Shown here in pieces: positions 24,061 to 64,000 of a stretch of 64,000 nucleotides of DNA; positions within the stretch are counted from its first letter, which is position 1, and every line of letters begins with the position of its first letter. The notes beneath the pieces were generated by a model. That model searched no databases and was not told the origin of the DNA. It saw nothing but the letters and a program-made list of their open reading frames with translations. Origin of the DNA: Geosiphon pyriformis uo1 (Eukaryota > Fungi > Glomeromycota); assembly GCA_016748015.1 (NCBI GenBank), contig JAAOMT010000299.1, forward strand, positions 1,101,924-1,165,923, in the 5' to 3' direction. The position numbers and the translations under genes are program-made.

Positions 24061-26503
24061 TTAGTCATTGTTGATTTTATCGGAATTTCCAATACGATTG
24101 ATGACCATGTAGTGGCATTTGTTGCGGGTACCCTAAAAAAAAAGTTTACATTGGCTGTTTCCAAAGAAAAAGTTTATAGCTTCGGTTTGTTTATTTTCAT
24201 GGCTTAATGTGATATATTAATTTCTTTGAATTATTGAAATAAAGTAAGTAAATAATGAATGAATGAATGAATGAATGAATGAATGAATTAATAAATAAAT
24301 AAATAAATTAATTAATAAATGATCATATATTAAAATTGTTGTTAACCTTTTAATTTTTATTAATATATATATTTTTTTTTGTAAAGAGTATTTTATTAAT
24401 GCATTATTCTATGCTCTATGCAGGTAATATATTAAATCAGGAATTTCAATTTATTCGAATTTTAAATTTATTACATACAAAGAGTTAGGGGATACAAAAT
24501 TAGCCATTTTTTTTATTTTATTTTTTTGATAATCCTGATCAATGTTCTCTCCAGTTTTTTCTCTTATATGTGTACAAAAAGTCAAACCAATAATCACTAA
24601 ATTTTATAATGGCACATGATGCCACAAGACTAACACGCACGCCGAAAATGGGAGACCAATTTATTGTGCGCGAATCAAAATCTTTTGTCAAACGATGAAA
24701 GATTTTTTTTAACGATGCTTACAATGGGATTGCGAAACTTTTCACAATTGATGTGAATTTGTGTGTACATTATTGAAAGATTTACAAAAGTTTGTTAAAA
24801 AAAATAAAAATAAAAAAATAAAAAAAAATGGATTATCATTTAAGTTTAATCAAGTTATTATTCGAATTCTTGTCGAAACCAGGATATTAAAATTTTGTGA
24901 TATTTTTCCTCAGGTATTGGGAGATGTAATGCATCAATAAATTTCGAAACTATAATTAGTTTTTCAATATTTAAAGTAACTTGATCCCACGTTTTTTTTT
25001 TTTTTTTTTTTTTTTTGAACTATATACTAATTTTTTTGACAAGTTTCCATGTACCAAAAAAAAAAAATTGCGTTACAAAGATTTTAGATGGTTTTTCTGC
25101 AGTGATATTTCACAAAGTACAAAAGTACCAATTTGGATCAAACATTTTTTAAAGATTGATTTCGAATCTCGAGAAAAAAAAACCTCTCCCCCCCCCCCCC
25201 ATTTTCAAGTCATCCCTGAAAAATTAAAATGAACAGGTTTTTTATTGTTTTATAATTTTGTTCCCAAGTTTTACTTGAATGGGCTAAAAAAAATTATCAA
25301 TGTGAAACTATCTAAAACTTTTACAGGAACAATAGAATGGAATTCAAAATTTTTTCCTTAGGAGAATCGCCTGGAAAGAATAAAATTTTTTAGAAAAAAT
25401 TTTTCAAATTAGATTGAATAATATTAAATTTTTTTTTTCTTCAATGAACTCAATTTAATTTATTTATTTTTCTTCAATGAACTTAATTTAATTTTTTCAT
25501 TTACATTATAAAAAACTTTTAACGTGATTTTCTTAATTTTATTCAAGGTAACTAACCAAAAGATATATTATATGTATTTTATTACTTATATCTTAAACAA
25601 TAAAATTATTCTATTTGTTATTGAAAGAAAGAAATAACCCTTAAATTTATGAAATCTGTTTGACAAAATAATTTTGTTTTTTTCAAAATATTCAAAAAAA
25701 AATAAAGCTTTCAAAAATTTCTTAATTTTTACCATTTATTAAAAATTAACTATTTATTATAAAAACTTTTTCATGTAATAGTTAATGTCAAATTTAATTT
25801 ATTTCTTTATTTTTTGTTTCAAAATTGGGTTATTTCTATTCGCTCATAAAATAAAATAAAAAAATTCTTTTCATTTTAAATGTATAAAAATAAAATCTGA
25901 ATGTTCAATTCATTATTATGTAATACATTGTTAAAATAGAAAAAGTTTTAAAATCTTTTCAATATTCATACTTAATTTCGAAAAACATATTAATAATAAT
26001 AATAATAATCTCGTAATATTGAATTCTGATTCTTTTCAAAAAATTAATTTTATTCTTTTATATTCTATGAAAAAATTTTTACATGCAATTTTGATTTTTA
26101 GAAAAAAATTAATCAAAAAATTTTTTTTTTAATTGAAATAAAATTTGACAAATAAAAAATTTTTATAAAAATCAGATTTATTCATATATTTAATTCTGAT
26201 TTAAAGTTTTGAAAAATGTTAAAAAAATTGAAATAGAAAATTTTACAAAGAAATTCAAGATTTTCCTTTCTATCAACAAGATCCTTGGCAACAAAGTTAT
26301 CAAATATGGGACTATAGGACAATTGGAAGGCATTTAGTTGAATGTGAATATTCAGAAAGCCTTCCAAGAGCAACACCGATGCTTTGCCAAAGTCCATAAA
26401 CTAGCATGTGTAGAGAGGGCCTAAAAACATTTGAATCACACGGTGTTTACAGATGAAACAGCTTTTCAGCTGTTACAAAATATAAAGAAATGGATGCCCA
26501 AAA

Positions 26504-26629
26504 ATTAGAGCAAATTATCGTGAAGGAGTGGCATGATATTCCCCGATCTATTCTAATCAGGTTAGCGGGATCAATGAAGTCGCGTTGTGAACTAATTATA
26601 GAAGGAAATGGTAATCGAATTTCCTTATA
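26504..26629 (+). mobile_element. Tc1/mariner transposase C-terminal fragment
   Basis: LEQIIVKEWHDIPRSILIRLAGSMKSRCELIIEGNGNRISL* fits the Tc1 C-terminal pattern and resembles the end of the 42661-43932 transposase. Confidence 0.75.
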
Positions 26630-26726
26630 AAAAAGATTTAGTTTTTTAGCTTTAATTTAATTTGTTAGTGTTTTTGATGTAAATTATGTTTTCTTATCAA
26701 GTTTTGATTTTTGGATCTAAACTTTT

Positions 26727-26979
26727 GGTTTCCAAAAAGTTTTTAATGAAAATATAGACTTTAAAGACGAATTAAGTGATGGTATTAAAGAAGTTAGTCA
26801 GGGTGTTTGGGGAGCTACCAAAAAATTTGGGCAAGTTCGCTATCAAAACAGAAACAGTGGTGGGAACGGGAGCAGCAATCGTTTCCATGGGGGTTTAAGC
26901 TGTTGCTTACCATGGTTCCCATAAAGAAAGAGGAAGGAGTTATGATAGTGAGTGCCCTATTTGTCGAGGAGATATCTAA
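26727..26979 (+). pseudogene. Bacterial-type Gly/Ala-rich small protein ending in a CxxC motif (frameshifted)
   Basis: GFQKVFNENIDFKDELSDGIKEVSQGVWGATKK / LGKFAIKTETVVGTGAAIVSMGV*AVAYHGSHKERGRSYDSECPICRGDI*; intronless. Confidence 0.4.
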
Positions 26980-27179
26980 AAAAAATTTTATGGCAAATAA
27001 ACAACCACTTCTTTTATTTCTTCACTCGAGTCAGTCTTATGTATTATCCACATTTTTTTTTCATTATAAACTTTTTCTTTTTTGATTTCTCTTATACTCT
27101 TTCTTATCTTATATTTTTTGGCCTTCTCTAATTATTCACATTGTTTGTAAAATAATTAGGAAAAGAAAGAATTAGTTAT

Positions 27180-27600
27180 TTATCAGCAAAAAAATCTTTG
27201 TCGGACATACTTATTAAATGTCTTCCACTTACTAGCAATAAACACCCCATAAAACTGCTTACTTAGGCATTTAAAGTATAATATCATTTAGGCACTCTCC
27301 ACCCCCCCCCCAAAAAAAAAAAACTGAGATTATTTTGATTTTTGATCTGACCAGTCTTCCCAGCTTCTTTTAGTTCTTGACCATAGAGATAACAAGCACA
27401 CAGGTCATAAGAATGATTAGGCTTAACTGGTCTTTTCTGGTGATCTGGTTGTGGGAATCTTTTTTGATATGACTAACAACCTCATATATACAAGCAGACT
27501 TTGTAACAGAATTCTCAACAAACTAGATACTCCGCTTCATGCAAGCAACAGAAAAACTTACCAAATGGCTTTAAGTTATTATTGGTGACATAGTATTTTT
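27180..27600 (-). pseudogene. Bacterial-type Cys-motif hypothetical protein (decayed)
   Basis: KPNHSYDLCACYLYGQELKEAGKTGQIKNQNNLSF / WGVESA*MILYFKCLSKQFYGVFIASKWKTFNKYVRQRF, joined across an expanded poly-T/poly-G run at ~27302-27322. Confidence 0.45.
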
Positions 27601-27627
27601 ATTGCAAATTTTAATCGTTTTCTCTCT

Positions 27628-27924
27628 ATTGTCTTCACCTTTGAAAAAGCTACCACTGGGGTCTAAAAGGGTAAAAGGTTAAGAAAAGAAATGCACAATT
27701 GTAAAAGAGAATTAACCAAAAGGAGTAGACCAATCTTAGCCTTACAGAAACTTATTTTACTTGAACAAAGCCAAAAAATTTAAGAGAATTAAACCAATTA
27801 CTCGGCAATCGTTTAGAAAATTAAAAAAGGGCCGAAATAATTTATGGTATCATAATTAACGACTAATATCGTATTATTTTTGATTAAATAGGTACTAATG
27901 CTTACAATGTATTAGATAAAAGTT
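27628..27924 (+). pseudogene. higB: HigB-like (RelE/ParE superfamily) toxin, frameshifted
   Basis: IVFTFEKATTGV*KGKRLRK...LALQKLILLEQ / KNLRELNQLLGNRLEN*KRAEIIYGIIIND*YRIIF* / GTNAYNVLD aligns by eye with the HigB pattern ...ARRKLxxLxxAxxLxDL...PGNRLEKLKG...YSIRINDQWRIxF...GxAYxV. Confidence 0.8.
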
Positions 27925-28229
27925 ATGGTAAGGAATCAAAAAAACCAAAAAACAAGAGAAAAAGATAGAATTAAAGCTTATTTACCCAGGGAAAATGTTA
28001 AGGGAAGAATTATTAATACTCTTAAAGATATCAGTCGACCAATTTACCAAAAGTATTCAGATAAAGAAGAAATAATTAAGGAAATATTAGCGGAAAAGCA
28101 AGATATTAGTTCTAATATTGATTGAGTTTGCAAAAGGGTTATAAATTAGATTGCTGAAAAGATAAAGAAGAGGAAAAAAAAATTAGCAAAAATTTAAGGC
28201 TTTTTTCACAAACAAGAAAAAGACTATGA
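27925..28229 (+). pseudogene. higA: HigA-like HTH (XRE) antitoxin, frameshifted with an internal deletion
   Basis: Immediately downstream of higB. ELKLIYPGKMLREELLILLKISVDQFTKSIQI / EEIIKEILAEKQDISSNI / *LSLQKGYKLD parallels HigA PIHPGEILxEEFLxPLxISxxxLAxxIxV...IxEIxxxKRxIT...WLNLQxxYxL. Confidence 0.8.
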
Positions 28230-28337
28230 ATGAAATGGTGAATAACAAGCTTTTTTCCACTATATAAAAATTTTAAAAACATCCTAATCAGTTCTTTGTC
28301 TTTGATTACTATAAAAAATTCGCTTGGTTCCTCTTCG

Positions 28338-28550
28338 CTAAATGGTTATTTCTTTGGCATTGCTATCTGAACAAAAAGATTTGGTCTGTTTTCCCCTTTT
28401 AGCTTTTTCGCGTTTTTTGGCTAATTTTTTTGCATACATATCCAAGGCTCTTTCTAAAATCTCAACTGCAAAACATTGTTCTTTCCAGACTAACTTTTTA
28501 TAAAACTCAGGCTTTACCCGCAGTCCTAGAGGCTTAGTTATTTCTTTTTT
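28338..28550 (-). pseudogene. Ribbon-helix-helix (CopG/ParG-like) DNA-binding protein, 5' end frameshifted
   Basis: KKEITKPLGLRVKPEFYKKLVWKEQCFAVEILERALDMYAKK: alternating beta strand (LGLRV), then P-E helix A and helix B (VEILERALDMY). Confidence 0.55.
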
Positions 28551-29497
28551 CTAGCATAAATTTAGATTTCAATTATTTTTAATTTTATAGTTTTTCTATC
28601 TGCTAGCAAAAATTATTTATTAGGCGTTCTGTGGGAAAAAATAAATCAAAAAGGAGAGGTTTTTGGATAAAAAGTAAGAGTTAAAAAGGAAAATTAATTG
28701 TAGTGTTAAAAACAGTTAATCAGTATTAAGTGTGTGTGCGAAAACTAAATTTTTAGTCTAATTTATTTGGTGTGAGAAATACATTATCAAACAAAATTTT
28801 TGGTAAAAAACAAATTGAAAAAAAAATTTTACATTTTAAATATTAATGGACTATTCTAAACAAAATGAGTTGAATATTAACAGAATTTTTAAAAATATTT
28901 AATTTTTCAAGATTTAAAATAATAATTGAGTTGTGATAGCTAGAATGTAATTTAGAAATTTATTTATTTTTTTTCAATAATAAAAAATAATTTACTAATT
29001 TTTAATAATATCTAATACGAGATATAATTTTCCAATTTTAATTCTTTATAATTTTATTTGATGATTTCAAAAATTTCAAAGAATTAAAATTTGCATTTTG
29101 TCAATTTTTGGGTATTAAATCTGACTTAAAGCCATTAAATAATTTCTATATTATATTTTTTTAGTATAAGTTAATTATTTATGAATTTAAAATACAAAGA
29201 CTTATTTAAATCAAGATAATATTTATGATCAAATTGATTGACTGATTAATAATCAAAAAAAAATCATAATTTCTGATTAAAATCGTGTAAAAAGTTTTAA
29301 ATCTGTTGATTTGTTTAATCTATTAAAATGAAAAAATAATAATTTTATTTTTTATAAATTTTTTCATTTACATTTTAAATTTATTTATTATATTATTAAA
29401 TGAATATTTATAATTTTGGGTTTTGTTGGTGTAATCTCCACGAAAATTTTTTTTTCAATTAAAAACACAATTTCATTAAAATAAATTTTATTTTTAA

Positions 29498-29533
<36 letters not shown>

Positions 29534-58299: not shown

Positions 58300-61200
58300 C
58301 TAACCACAATGAGAGCAAAAGATAATTTTAAAGAAATTGCTTTTTCTTTTCCCTCTTTCCTCAATTCCTGTTAACTATTTCTTTTAACTTATCCTTATTT
58401 GTTGTGATGGAACTGGTGGGCTCGTCTGCTGATAGTTCTGGTTTGGGTTCGGCTGGTTTGGACCTGCCAGAGTGCTAAAAACAAGCGTGTTAATACAGTC
58501 TATTCCTATGGTGTATTTTACAAGAAGTCTAAGAAGCCTGCAGTTGGCATTTTGGTTGAGTTGTCCACTGATCCTCTATGTTTGGAAGATTTGGGTGGTG
58601 ACAATGGTAAGCTGGTCGCATCCTGGGGAAGCAGAGTAGATAGCATTTCTGGCAGTATAAGTGGTCTTTCGGATGTCAAGAATTTGGAGAACATGGTTGC
58701 TGAGAAGACAAGCTACATTGATTCAGATGAGGACAATGAAATGAACAAAATTATGCTGCGAAGAACTTGCACTTGGACGTATATGTTGGAACAACCTCTT
58801 AAGGCACTTCTATTTGCTACTATGAATGACAATGACGACAATTCTGTGTTGCCGCCTCCTAAAATCAGTAAGTCTAATCAGCTGCCTTCTTCTAAATCAT
58901 ATGTTCTAAAGAGTCATAGTTTCAGGCCAATGAAATTGTTTGCTCTAGATGTAAATTTGTCAGCTGTTCCTGGCAAAACTAATAGTGATAAGCTCATTTT
59001 AATCAAAAAAATTTTTTACAAAATTGATGGTTTTGGGGGAGCTTCAACTCCCTTAAAATTTCTTGGTATTATTTATTCAACTTTCACAAATGAGTCTAGT
59101 TTGATTAAGGCAGGGAAATGGCAGTTCATGAGAAAATTGTTGTCAATGGTGATTTTAAAAAAGCAAACATTCATTCGAATCGGGAAGTGATCATTAAGAA
59201 GATCCCAGTTGATCTTTCAAAGTTGGCTGTAAAATCTGTTTTTTCTAAATTTGGCAAGATTGTTTTCATTAGAATGCAATTGATTGGTCTTTGGCAAAAG
59301 GCCCTGATTGAATTTGAGTCATCAGAAATTGCCAGTTTGGTTGCTTCTAAGTGGTCTGTTCTTGTGGGAAAAAATTTGGTTTGTGTAGTACTGGCTGTCA
59401 ATAATAAACAAATATGGATGTCAAGAGATTGTCATCAGGCTTTGCTCTATACTCTTCCAGTTAGTACTTCAGCCCATGATCTGTCAGAATTGTTGGTATC
59501 ATATGGTGGGAGAACTTGTTTCATTGGCTGCAATCCTGGTTCATATGTCCGCGATTGGTGTACAATCATTTGTTTTGAGAATGAGAATGCCAAATTGGCT
59601 GCTGTTAGTACCGTTCTAATTTTCAAGGGTGTTAGTTTGCATTGAACTAGTCTTGTTTTGGCTAGCTGTACCAAGTGTGAACAGTTTGGTCATATTACTA
59701 CCAGCTGTCCTGTGGGTGGAAGTTCTGGTGTTTATGGGAAGAGGATAGTTTCTGATCAGGATCAGGTTTGTTTAGCTAGTATATATAAGAAAAAGTCGGC
59801 TCTTATTGCTCGTCCAGTTTTGTTTGGTGGCAAAACATGGACCCAAGTTGCTAGTGGCATCTCTTTTCATATGTCTCCTTCTGGTTCTCTTGGGTCTGGT
59901 TTGTGTGCTGGTTTGGTTCTCCCTTCAGCAGTCTCTGATTATCTTGTTGTTTTCCATTTGAATGATTATTTGGCGGTTTTGGAACACTCTTTGGAGCTTC
60001 TGGCTGACCATGTTTCTGGCATCCTGGTCAAGTTGGATTCCTTTGGTGTGATTCCTTTGGTTCTTTCTTCCCTGGCCACCTCTTTTGTTATTTCTGCAGC
60101 TTTGAGTTTTGAAGTGAATTCAGATATAATTGTGGACAATGCTTTGAGTTCTTTTGATATTACTTCTCCTGTCACTATTGATGCTGTTGTCGACCTCAGC
60201 ACTAGTAGTTCCAAGGTTCTTACTGCCAAAGTGGGTGGTTTGGAGACGAAATTGGTCACTTTGGAGGCTTTGGTTGGTTCAGTTTTAGATAAGTTGAATC
60301 TTCTGTGGTCTGGTTCAGGTCTGTTAGCTCTTATGTCATCTTAATGACTCACTTTATTTGGAAGATTGCCACATGCAATGTCAGAGGTATGAACATTTGT
60401 GTGAAGCAGACAGACATTGTTTATTGGCATAAAGGCATGAACAATATGGTTTCTATTGTCACTGAAACAAAGTTGAAGGGAAAGATTTGCCCTTGGATCA
60501 CTAATAAATTTGATGGTGTTCGTGTTTTTACTTCTGGACTGGATTCTGGTCACATGGAATTTGGTGTTGCAATCATTTTGAACTCTTTTTTGATAAGACA
60601 TGTGTGTAAAGTTTCAGAGGTGTCTGGTCGGCTTCTGTTGGTTAGATTGCTTTTTAAGAAGAAACTCTCTGTGTTTATTCTGGGGCTGTATGCTGGTGCG
60701 TCTTCAGCAGTTCGTTTTTCTCAGGCTGGCAAGGTTAACTCTCTTATTGCTAAGGCTGTGAATGAGTCCTTTTTTGTTGTTTTTGGTGGTGATTTTAATG
60801 AGAATGGTTCTCACAAGTGTGCAAGTTTCAAAAAATGTTTTAAGTTGGGTTTGATTAACTCTCTGGAAGGAAGCTCTTTCGTAAAGTCACCCACTTGGTG
60901 CAATTCTTGTGGCATCACTAAAATGATTAACTATGTGCTTATTTCTTCTAATTTGGTTGGTGCGGTGGTGGATTGTGGTGTGGATGGTGTTGAAAACTAT
61001 TTTAATACTAATTACAAGGCTGTGTTTGTGTCAATGGGACTAGGAGGCCTGCTTAATGTCAAGTTGAAATTACTGCACAAACAAGCAAATAAAGATTATT
61101 GGAAGTATGATATCAAAAATACCAATGAGATTAAGTGGTCTGAGTTCAGGGATGCTATGGCTGCTAATGCTGTTATGTTCTCGGATAAGTTTGTTGCAGC

Positions 61201-64000
61201 TAAGCAGTTTTCTAATTTGGATGCGATGTAGAACATTGTTTGTAAGATTATAGTTCTTTCAGCTAGTGGAACGTTCAAGAAAAAGTGGTTTAAGAGTTTT
61301 GATTGTGTTTTTAATAAGATGTCTTCCCAGTTTCATAAACTGGAGCTACTAGTGTCTAAACTGGTGAAGGCTTCTTAGTTGGTTTCTGGTGGAGATTTTG
61401 CTTTGTTGTTGGATACTTGGAACAGGCTTGATTCTGTGGGCACTTTGCTGATGAGATCTCTGTTTCTTTTTGGCTCTAGTTTTAATGTGATCCATTCAGG
61501 GCTGGCTAAGATGAACAAGTCTTACCGCTCTTTTAAGTTGTTGGAATCTAAGCATGCTGAAAAATTTCATATGAGACAAGCTATTGAGAGGAGGATAGAA
61601 AGTTTTAAGATGGATAAAAGTCATATCATTAGGAGTGTTTTGGAGCATTCTTTTCATAAAGTGGTGTTGAATCATTTGGTGGATGATAGGGAGTTGGTCT
61701 TGGAGCCTGAGTTGGTTAAATCTAAGATGGATGGAATCATGGAGGGTTGGACCAGGAAGCATGTAGTGGCTTCTGATATCTCTAATAATTGGGCGAGGCA
61801 ATTTCAGTCTTTGAATTATGTCTTCGATAGTGCCTTCTCTAATGTGATGTATTCAATTGGTTTTAATGAAATATTTGATGTTATTTCAAATTTGCCTGAT
61901 GGGAAAGCAGCTGGTCTTTCTAGTATTACTAATAAACTTTAGAAACACTGTGACAAGTCAGTCTTGGATATGCTTTTGGTGCTTTTAAATTTTTGTTTGG
62001 GTTGTGAATCAGTGCCTAGACCTTGGAGAGAAGCCTAGGTCTTGATGATTCCTAAACCTTAAGAGTGAGAAGGGGTTCTTACTAATACCTGCCCTATTGC
62101 TTTGATTGAGACAGCTTGCAAAATTCTTTCTAAGATTCTTTCAGATCGGATCTTTCTGGCTTGTAGCACTTTTAATGTCCTCCATGGGGACAATTTCTCT
62201 GTCCTGAAAGGTATGTCTACTTAATCACCTATTTTCGCTATTGGTTCAGTGATCAAAGATGCTTTGGAAAAAAACTGAGAGTTGTGACTGGTTTTATAAG
62301 ATATATACAAAGCTTATAATTCTGTTGGTTGGGAGCATCTTGAGAAGAGTTTGGTTAGGATCAAAATGTGTGACAAATTTATCAGATTTTTTGGTAGTAT
62401 TCATAATGGTTGCACTGACAGATTTTGGTTTGACTGATGAATATCATGTTCACAATGGATTGGATCAGGGGGAGGTTTTTTTGCCACTTTTCTGACACAT
62501 ATTTTATGACTCATTTTTGTGTAAAATTAAGAGACAGGAGAGCATTTGTGGTTACAGGTTGATTTCTCATTTTGTTTCTAAAACTAGCCAGATGGAATCT
62601 CAAGCTGAACTGACATCATTTCTGGCCACCGGTGCTTTTGTTGATGATACTATCTGGGTCAGTAGCAGCCAGACTGCTACACAACATATTCTCAATGTTG
62701 TTAGTGATTTCTTTCATTTAAATGACATTTCGATAAATAATGACAAGACTGTGGTTATTTTTTTCAACTGTCAGGTTGCTGCTTCTTATCTAACTATCAG
62801 TGGTATGCCAATTTCCATTACTAAAAGAGGTGAATCTCATCATTATCTAGGGATTTTTTTTATCTTCTGAAGGTCTTTTGAAGCCCAACTTGGTTAAGGT
62901 GCATTCAGATGTTCGGTTTTTTGTCAATTGCATTCTAAAAAAAGTTATTTCAGATAAACAGTTTGCTTATTTGGTGTCTTCAGTTCTCTTTTCTATCATC
63001 AGCTACAGAACTCAGTTCAGTTTTATTCCTTTCAGTGTGTGTAATAAGTGGAACGCTTTGATTCGCAAGGGCCTGAAGTCCAAATCTGGGCTGCCTCTGG
63101 ACTTTTCCAATGATACGCTTTATCATCCTTCCTTGTACAATTTAAAAACTTTTGAGCAGATTCAGGCTAAGAGCAAGTCAGCTTCTGTTATTGCTTTTGC
63201 AAATTCGGTTAGTATTTCAGGTCACTTGTTTTCTCATAGGTCTCACAATCTCCAGGTTCTTAGCTGGTGTCCTCATCACTCTTTGTTGTTTCCTGTTCGT
63301 GTTAGAATTAGCCCTTCAAACAACTTTTTGGCAGGTGTAGTTCATATTTTTTCTGGGTGTAATTTGTCTTTGGGTGGCTTTCTGGCCAGTGTTTTTCATC
63401 TTCAGAGCAGTATTTCTATGTCTCTAGTTCTTGGCAAGACAATTTTCTTCAAATGTGTCTCTTCCCTTAAGCATTATGATATTGCTTTTGTAGAACAGCT
63501 TTGTAACTGGAATGGCATTGTTTTTGATTGGAAGACTTTCAAGCATTGGAAAAGACTAGACTCCCATGGCCCAGTCTCCTTCTGGTTTGATCTCTGTTTG
63601 TTTTCTTGGTGGTGTAGCTTCTCCTTCTAGTCGTTCTCTTTATGAGGGTGTTTGTGGCTCTTCTGACATCTATCAGTCTCTTGGTTTTGGTGTTGTTTGT
63701 AATAATCTGTTGAATGTTGGTGCCGCCCACCTCTCTGTGTACACAGATAGATCTTTGAGTAACTTGGGCAGTGTTGACATGTTGGCTGGTCCTATGGTTT
63801 TCTTTAAAAACATTGATTCAGGTCTGGATGTGGGGGTTTCTGGTTTGGTTTTTTCTACTTTGGCAGAGTTGCAGGCCATTGCTTTAGCTCTTGAGTGTGT
63901 TTCTTCTTTTCATTTGGTTGACTTGTTTTCGGACAGCCAGGTGGCTATAGATGCTTACAGGTTGGAGTTTTTATCAGCTGGCCCTGATTTCAGGAATTGT
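58300..64000 (+). mobile_element. Degenerate non-LTR retrotransposon (LINE) with ORF1 and APE-RT-RNase H ORF2, truncated by the window end
   Basis: ORF1 from ATG 58407, with an RRM-like region and zinc knuckle CTKCEQFGHITTSC. ORF2: APE motifs ATCNVRG, TETKL, GGDFNE; RT motifs PIALIET, LDQGEV, FVDDT; RNase H motifs VYTDRSL, AELQAIALAL, SDSQ. Many stops and frameshifts; 5' boundary approximate. Confidence 0.93.

Follow-up and report, generated by a model that had tools for sequence, protein, structure and literature searches.

The prototype HigBA toxin-antitoxin (TA) system, that of plasmid Rts1 of Proteus vulgaris, is encoded by an operon in which the toxin gene stands first, and the same order is found in pairs of the families PF05015 and TIGR02607. 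HigB toxins possess a core with the motifs GNRLE and IND-Q-(W/Y)-R and HigA antitoxins possess HPGE and helix-turn-helix (HTH) regions, consistent with the 75 HigB and 63 HigA sequences used in this work. Foreign fragments in host chromosomes, mostly non-functional and decaying, are known from the Wolbachia insertions of arthropods and nematodes and from the nuclear copies of mitochondrial and plastid DNA (numts and nupts). Here we describe a decayed higB-higA operon in the genome of the fungus Geosiphon pyriformis uo1, in a stretch of 64,000 nucleotides, at 1.10-1.17 Mb of contig C722 of the assembly (128.3 Mb, 792 contigs), which is called the window below. The operon is best explained as a nuclear fossil of DNA from a Mollicutes-related endobacterium (MRE), a reading to which we give a probability of about 0.88.

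The MRE have Mucoromycota as hosts, and the published circular genomes, from Linnemannia elongata AD073 and Benniella sp. AD185, measure 326,911 and 615,212 bp (PMC10507103). Gene transfer from host to MRE is known for MGMT and for PknD/LRR genes, and MRE-like matches in Glomeromycotina assemblies have been treated as contamination (PMC10507103). A survey of horizontal gene transfer in Rhizophagus irregularis listed no MRE donors (PMC5982333), and a 2026 review speaks of transfer into the genome of the host only as a late stage, and a hypothetical one (PMC13315312). In the literature searched there is no report of transfer from an MRE to a fungus, only the host-to-MRE direction being described there.

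The 36-amino-acid (aa) piece encoded at 27965-28072 of the window was compared by phmmer with 1.84 billion representative proteins and matched P0002, a protein of 121 aa (68% identical, E 1.9e-4) which is a full HigA (TIGR02607, 79.9 bits with a cut-off of 47.7). The top match of the same search, P0001, is a repetitive protein and was rejected as a relative. P0002 is encoded on a 2.5 kb metagenome contig (L128; ENA ERZ27257215 NODE_796), directly after a gene for 96 aa (43-333, product recorded as PF05015) with which its gene overlaps by 11 nt, and both genes are open only when TGA is read as Trp (genetic code 4). At the DNA level, blastn aligned positions 27737-28118 of the window to 125-513 of L128 (76% identity over 397 nt, E 2e-79) and positions 28119-28174 to 557-612 (87.5% over 56 nt), and in a global alignment the window copy and the L128 module were identical at 393 of 487 positions (80.7%). 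The same module is present on five more metagenome contigs (L151-L155; 30-33% GC, code 4), which match the window at 73-78%, and a DNA-level identity of 73-87% to the window module was found only in code-4 contigs. A truncated copy, consisting of the higB 3' end and of higA with a 10-nt deletion, was also seen at 563-890 of L129 (JGI metagenome 3300060273, 1077 nt), downstream of unrelated T-rich sequence and with some states in common with the window copy; it may be a pseudogene of an MRE or else a similar fossil in the genome of a different host.

Profile comparisons also pointed to both genes. True HigB-HigA pairs from 80 loci were gathered from IMG/VR through a scan for the back-translated motif INDQWRI, and hidden Markov models (HMMs) were built from 75 HigB and 63 downstream HigA sequences; in spot checks of the collected pairs two HigB proved to be PF05015 (66-67 bits) and the HigA to be HTH_3 proteins. 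The HigB model scored 20-23 bits on 27765-27911 with stops written as X (E 1.7e-5 per window; short of the 27 bits that Pfam requires for PF05015) and the HigA model 14.5-16.5 bits on 27965-28081, the three HigA pieces, one in each frame, following each other in order along the model (positions 4-42, 40-55 and 70-90). These two models match the window at this site only, with next-best scores of 10.8 and 4.6 bits, and when the window was simulated 150 times with a second-order Markov model, HMMER at its default filters let through no HigB match and HigA scored 12.4 bits at best. A 47-aa open piece had TIGR02607 of NCBIfam as its sole family match (18.8 bits, E 0.0011, short of the curated cut-off of 47.7 bits), is the top match to that family across the 128 Mb genome, and the label given by PHROGs to the open piece is 'plasmid antitoxin with HTH domain'. 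The earlier note on this DNA had recognised HigB and HigA from peptide motifs, and this identity was borne out by the blastn match to an intact module together with the HMM and simulation results.

Other searches were blank: Pfam gave no family for the short open pieces, tblastn of these pieces gave no match among plasmids, and a second pattern, written for Mollicute-type HigB, had no match. The search of the genome contigs with PF05015 and with our own HigB and HigA alignments returned no candidates, this being a first-look search stage and not evidence of absence. Two candidates elsewhere in the genome were rejected, the second TIGR02607 match (L002) being a retrotransposon gag with a CCHC knuckle and the second match to the GNRLE..IND pattern (L106) a fragment of a long interspersed nuclear element (LINE).

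The higB pseudogene (HigB-like toxin of PF05015 type, RelE superfamily) occupies 27737-27930 of the + strand and corresponds to about codons 28-96 of the intact relative, codons 1 to about 27 being absent. It has +1 insertions at 27764 and 27773 and in-frame TAA codons at 27822, 27864 and 27885, in place of Leu (TTA in L128), Gln (CAA) and Trp (TGA), the last of them differing from TGA by a single transition. A 12-nt deletion at 27914 takes four C-terminal codons, the stop codon is lost, and there is no complete open reading frame (ORF) with the C-terminal catalytic region. No homology was detectable in 27691-27736, which may be a further higB remnant. The higA pseudogene (HigA antitoxin of TIGR02607 type) follows on the + strand at 27925-28229, its ATG at 27925 lying within the end of higB just as its L128 counterpart starts at 323 and higB ends there at 333. 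Indels were found at 27940 (+6), 27965 (-2), 28065 (-1), 28118 (-43) and 28174 (+4), besides smaller ones, and the HTH domain is broken by the frameshifts at 27965 and 28065 and by the 43-nt deletion, which removes profile positions ~56-69. The TGA codons at 28119 and 28155 are Trp (TGA) codons of the intact gene, and in the fossil block as a whole TGA stands at three conserved Trp positions and TAA at a fourth. The higBA fossil has 13 indels in total, at least seven of them frame-shifting, and its substitutions are rich in transitions with a slight lean towards AT (42 GC-to-AT and 32 AT-to-GC). By descent the two genes are normal HigB and HigA family members, but neither is intact. As predicted from its sequence, the fossil is without toxin-antitoxin activity or any expected function and could make neither protein.

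The peptides quoted in the earlier note are indeed present on the + strand of 27690-28230, in three frames and interrupted by stops, but YRIIFD, the stop and IGTNAYNV share one frame, and the ATG at 27925 and IYPG are in different frames. The toxin-then-antitoxin order that it proposed holds, with the same overlap as in the intact relatives. The extent it gave, 27628-28229, is correct at the right end only, recognisable homology beginning at 27737. Its statement that a whole module was inserted and then decayed is supported as to a decayed bacterial insert but not as to wholeness, with ~82 nt of the higB 5' part, 12 nt of the higB 3' part and 43 nt of higA missing.

A third broken gene lies next to the operon. 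The remnant of an MRE gene encoding a Cys-rich protein was located on the minus strand at 27192-27589 by tblastx to the divergently oriented neighbour of higBA in L153, in colinear segments that are 35-61% identical and have a summed E-value of 2e-32. It is interrupted by in-frame stops (TGA at 27515, TGA at 27482-27484 at a conserved Trp position, and TAG at 27473). The order is the same as in L153, the Cys-rich gene (-) being followed by higB and higA (+), and the window lacks about 750 nt that separate the Cys-rich gene from higB there, among them the 5' ends of both. As far as sequence comparison can tell, this shows a fossil larger than had been reported, with a homologous block of at least ~1.04 kb (27192-28229) and three broken genes, in a single copy at this locus. 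The Cys-rich (CxxC-repeat) proteins belong to no Pfam family, and their genes adjoin higBA on L128 (967-1824), L153 (471-938, -) and L154 (1360-1893), members being also present in the genomes G030 and G039. An 18-nt motif with C-runs (CTCTCC..CCCCA) occurs at 25184-25201 and again, 2.1 kb away, at 27295-27312; this second copy is placed within the remnant of the Cys-rich gene, with an A-run after it.

In a PF05015 search of 401 Mycoplasmatales genomes five, each of tiny size, were above the cut-off, and every match contained TGA codons. The family was carried by four of the five genomes of one five-member GTDB family as against 1 of the 396 other Mycoplasmatales sampled, and by three of 401 genomes in a phylum-wide sample. 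This GTDB family, which includes G008, G020, G030 and G039, is that of the MRE of Mucoromycota, and in its higBA modules 25 of the 26 Trp codons are TGA. Moreover, the neighbouring gene on L128 has 71% DNA identity to G039 and the Cys-rich gene on L153 has 72% to G030. A SUMO-protease (PF02902), tried as an MRE marker, was matched in G039 only. On L151 (205-865) and L152 (127-799) a ribbon-helix-helix (RHH)-like gene is paired with a PemK/MazF toxin gene (PF02452, 77-79 bits), directly upstream of higBA in the former and ~3 kb away in the latter; the L151 arrangement suggests that the TA modules of MRE-type contigs cluster on a mobile island. Taken at the level of sequence, the donor is thus supported as probably an MRE-type Mollicute that reads UGA as Trp, whether through its genome or a mobile island.

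The donor could instead have been another bacterium, a plasmid or a phage, with the likeness to MRE reflecting the mobility of higBA. TA modules are mobile, and several TA pairs stand side by side in MRE-type contigs (PemK/MazF by higBA), which suggests a mobile island. Percent identity alone does not discriminate between donors, a Mycoplasmatales HMM compared with the IMG/VR HMM gained 7 bits while the noise rose likewise, and a maximum-likelihood tree of GTDB representatives was equally indecisive. These three comparisons are superseded by the DNA-level relatives, which resolve the donor: 73-87% DNA identity is reached only by code-4 contigs, TGA stands at Trp positions, a second and unrelated neighbour gene is shared in the same order, and outside higBA the DNA of the contigs is 71-72% identical to that of MRE genomes. 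A different donor is therefore very improbable; an origin of the fragment from a mobile element of an MRE is possible and is included in the reading as MRE DNA.

The join of this DNA to the fungal chromosome was examined through read-based contigs. One of 2924 nt covers 26596-29469 with zero differences and includes the end of a transposase-like remnant and 700 nt of a desert with 13-15% GC; its depth is 76 and that of its left neighbour 82, a comparison of the kind that the earlier note had suggested. Since this contig was rebuilt from reads without differences and at its neighbour's depth, a chimeric join is unlikely. The assembly might still have misjoined the pseudogene-rich DNA of a living MRE into a fungal contig, as pseudogenes abound in MRE genomes and contigs of MRE contaminate Mucoromycota assemblies (PMC11423566, PMC10507103), and the read-based contigs end at both sides of 26596-29469. 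Against such a chimera stand the matching depth, the presence on the same read-based contig of the transposase-like end and of an AT desert typical of this genome, the TAA and TAG stops and many frameshifts, the position of the window 1.1 Mb inside its contig, and separate copies that adjoin a P450 gene. Among the eukaryotic features of the assembly are a LINE, the remnant of a Tc1/mariner element, a gag that has a CCHC knuckle, and the P450 gene, and the block is flanked by eukaryotic transposons as well as by AT deserts. The chance of a chimera or of contamination is accordingly slim.

The reverse direction, a fungal module passed to the MRE, would agree with the documented flow from host to MRE (PMC10507103) but is hardly credible, as HigB and HigA belong to bacterial families, each of the 80 IMG/VR loci is bacterial or phage-like, and the bacterial copies are intact whereas the fungal ones are broken and have TGA at sites that require Trp. 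An accidental likeness of AT-rich junk to HigB and HigA motifs, for which the blank Pfam result on short open pieces and the blank genome searches with PF05015 and our own alignments might speak, is dismissed by the blastn and phmmer E-values and by the HMM and simulation results.

The explanation as a nuclear fossil of MRE DNA has several points to its disadvantage. In the maximum-likelihood tree, which holds GTDB representatives only, the fossil is sister to a G039 module with support of 84/29, which does not settle the donor, and the approximately unbiased test leaves other placements unrejected (p 0.357). None of the contigs found is the true donor, and part of the divergence is bacterial: the fossil and L128 differ at 14.5%, 15.0% and 28.7% of first, second and third codon positions, and since third positions differ twice as often, some of the change dates from a time of selection in bacteria, and at most ~15% is left for neutral decay in the host. 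Moreover, the sole public run with this sequence is probably the assembly's own sample, so that the read support is not independent, and neither the repeat at 26596-26612 nor the simple repeat at 29470 is bridged by a read-based contig.

If the block is MRE DNA that entered the nucleus, its history can be sketched. A fragment of an MRE, possibly from a TA-rich mobile island, would have been released in the hyphal cytoplasm and would then have entered the nucleus, where end joining may have placed it in a transposon-rich and gene-poor region, as happens to organelle DNA and to Wolbachia DNA in insects. The genes were presumably dead on arrival, because the donor encodes Trp by UGA and this codon would be read as a stop if the host uses the standard nuclear code; translation would end at codon 77 of the 96 in higB and at codon 79 of the 121 in higA. 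Neutral drift since then could account for the AT-biased substitutions, the 13 indels and the deletions of 12, 43 and ~750 nt.

Two more decayed higBA copies exist in this genome, on contig C692 at 1588458-1588690 (L140) and 1608720-1608952 (L139), with locus coordinates of ~1395-1660. They are 99.8% alike and lie 20 kb apart, in a segmental duplication of ~20 kb, next to a P450 gene. In both HigB is fused to HigA through a deletion of ~230 nt, and their deletions differ from those of the window copy; each is nearer to L128 than to the window copy, which has the longer branch. This hints that the window and C692 fossils are separate insertions.

To the left of the Cys-rich remnant, at 26833-27061 on the + strand, there is a fragment of a gene that we call ORF X, namely the 3' part of a family of 159-aa ORFs, colinear with the ORF found upstream of the C692 fossils. 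ORF X encodes 159-161 aa that are rich in Gly, Ala and Val at the N-terminus and share a conserved motif, GRSYDSDC..C, at the C-terminus, and its copies at L140:612-1088 (+) and L139:182-664 (+) on C692 are intact save that one is frameshifted near its end. A divergent copy is carried by contig C3. Relatives occur in the MRE genomes G030 (41%, E 3e-10) and, more weakly, G008, and no match was found in the six metagenome contigs. That this fungal genome holds a scattered archive of MRE DNA, to which the fossil would belong, is in our view as likely as not. If such an archive were confirmed it would mean a recurrent flow of DNA from endosymbiont to nucleus in Mucoromycota, orthologous fossils across species could date the entry of MRE into each host lineage, and such dates would directly test the debate on early versus late invasion.

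The window has a GC content of ~25%, and the block 26200-28750 (26-37% GC) is bounded by deserts of 13-15% GC. Its left part contains the C-terminal remnant of what appears by eye to be a Tc1/mariner-type transposase (26431-26630, +), in which Pfam gave no transposase match and which is repeated in the genome, its k-mer depth being 477 compared with ~80; the read-based contigs end at this repeated stretch. To the right of the fossil, 28230-29500 has no relative in MRE contigs, and a minus-strand ORF at 28341-28550 considered as an RHH antitoxin received no support. The GC-richest part of the window (38-41%) is a LINE, that is a non-LTR (long terminal repeat) retrotransposon, at 58500-64000 (+), whose ORF at 60305-61231 is of the endonuclease/exonuclease/phosphatase type according to a database search and is followed downstream by ORFs that read by eye as reverse-transcriptase-like; an atlas search with the LINE ORF provided no useful taxonomy.

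A decayed MRE fragment in a host chromosome would, if verified, indicate that the reverse of the known flow also occurs. The rarity of working transferred genes could then be explained by UGA, which is Trp in the donor and a stop under the standard nuclear code. Fossils of this kind would serve as markers of the history of the symbiosis, and MRE-like matches in fungal assemblies would not always be contamination, so that filters may delete real nuclear sequence.

Compared with known systems, the window copy is closest to the MRE-type modules (L128 and L151-L155; G008, G020, G030 and G039), with which it shares genes, gene order, the 11-nt overlap and TGA for Trp, the contigs being alike to it at 73-87% DNA identity. 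The modules on MRE-type contigs, however, are open frames in DNA of 30-33% GC, whereas the window copy is truncated, frameshifted and laden with stops in eukaryotic DNA. HigBA of Rts1 and the PF05015/TIGR02607 pairs have the same toxin-first order but only ~40-48% protein identity. The transfers of MGMT and PknD/LRR genes from host to MRE involve the same partners in the opposite direction and were kept intact in the bacterium, while the window copy is a fossil in the host. Insertions of the Wolbachia and numt type represent the same phenomenon, with the difference that the donor here would be a Mollicute with a different genetic code and the host apparently a member of the Mucoromycota.
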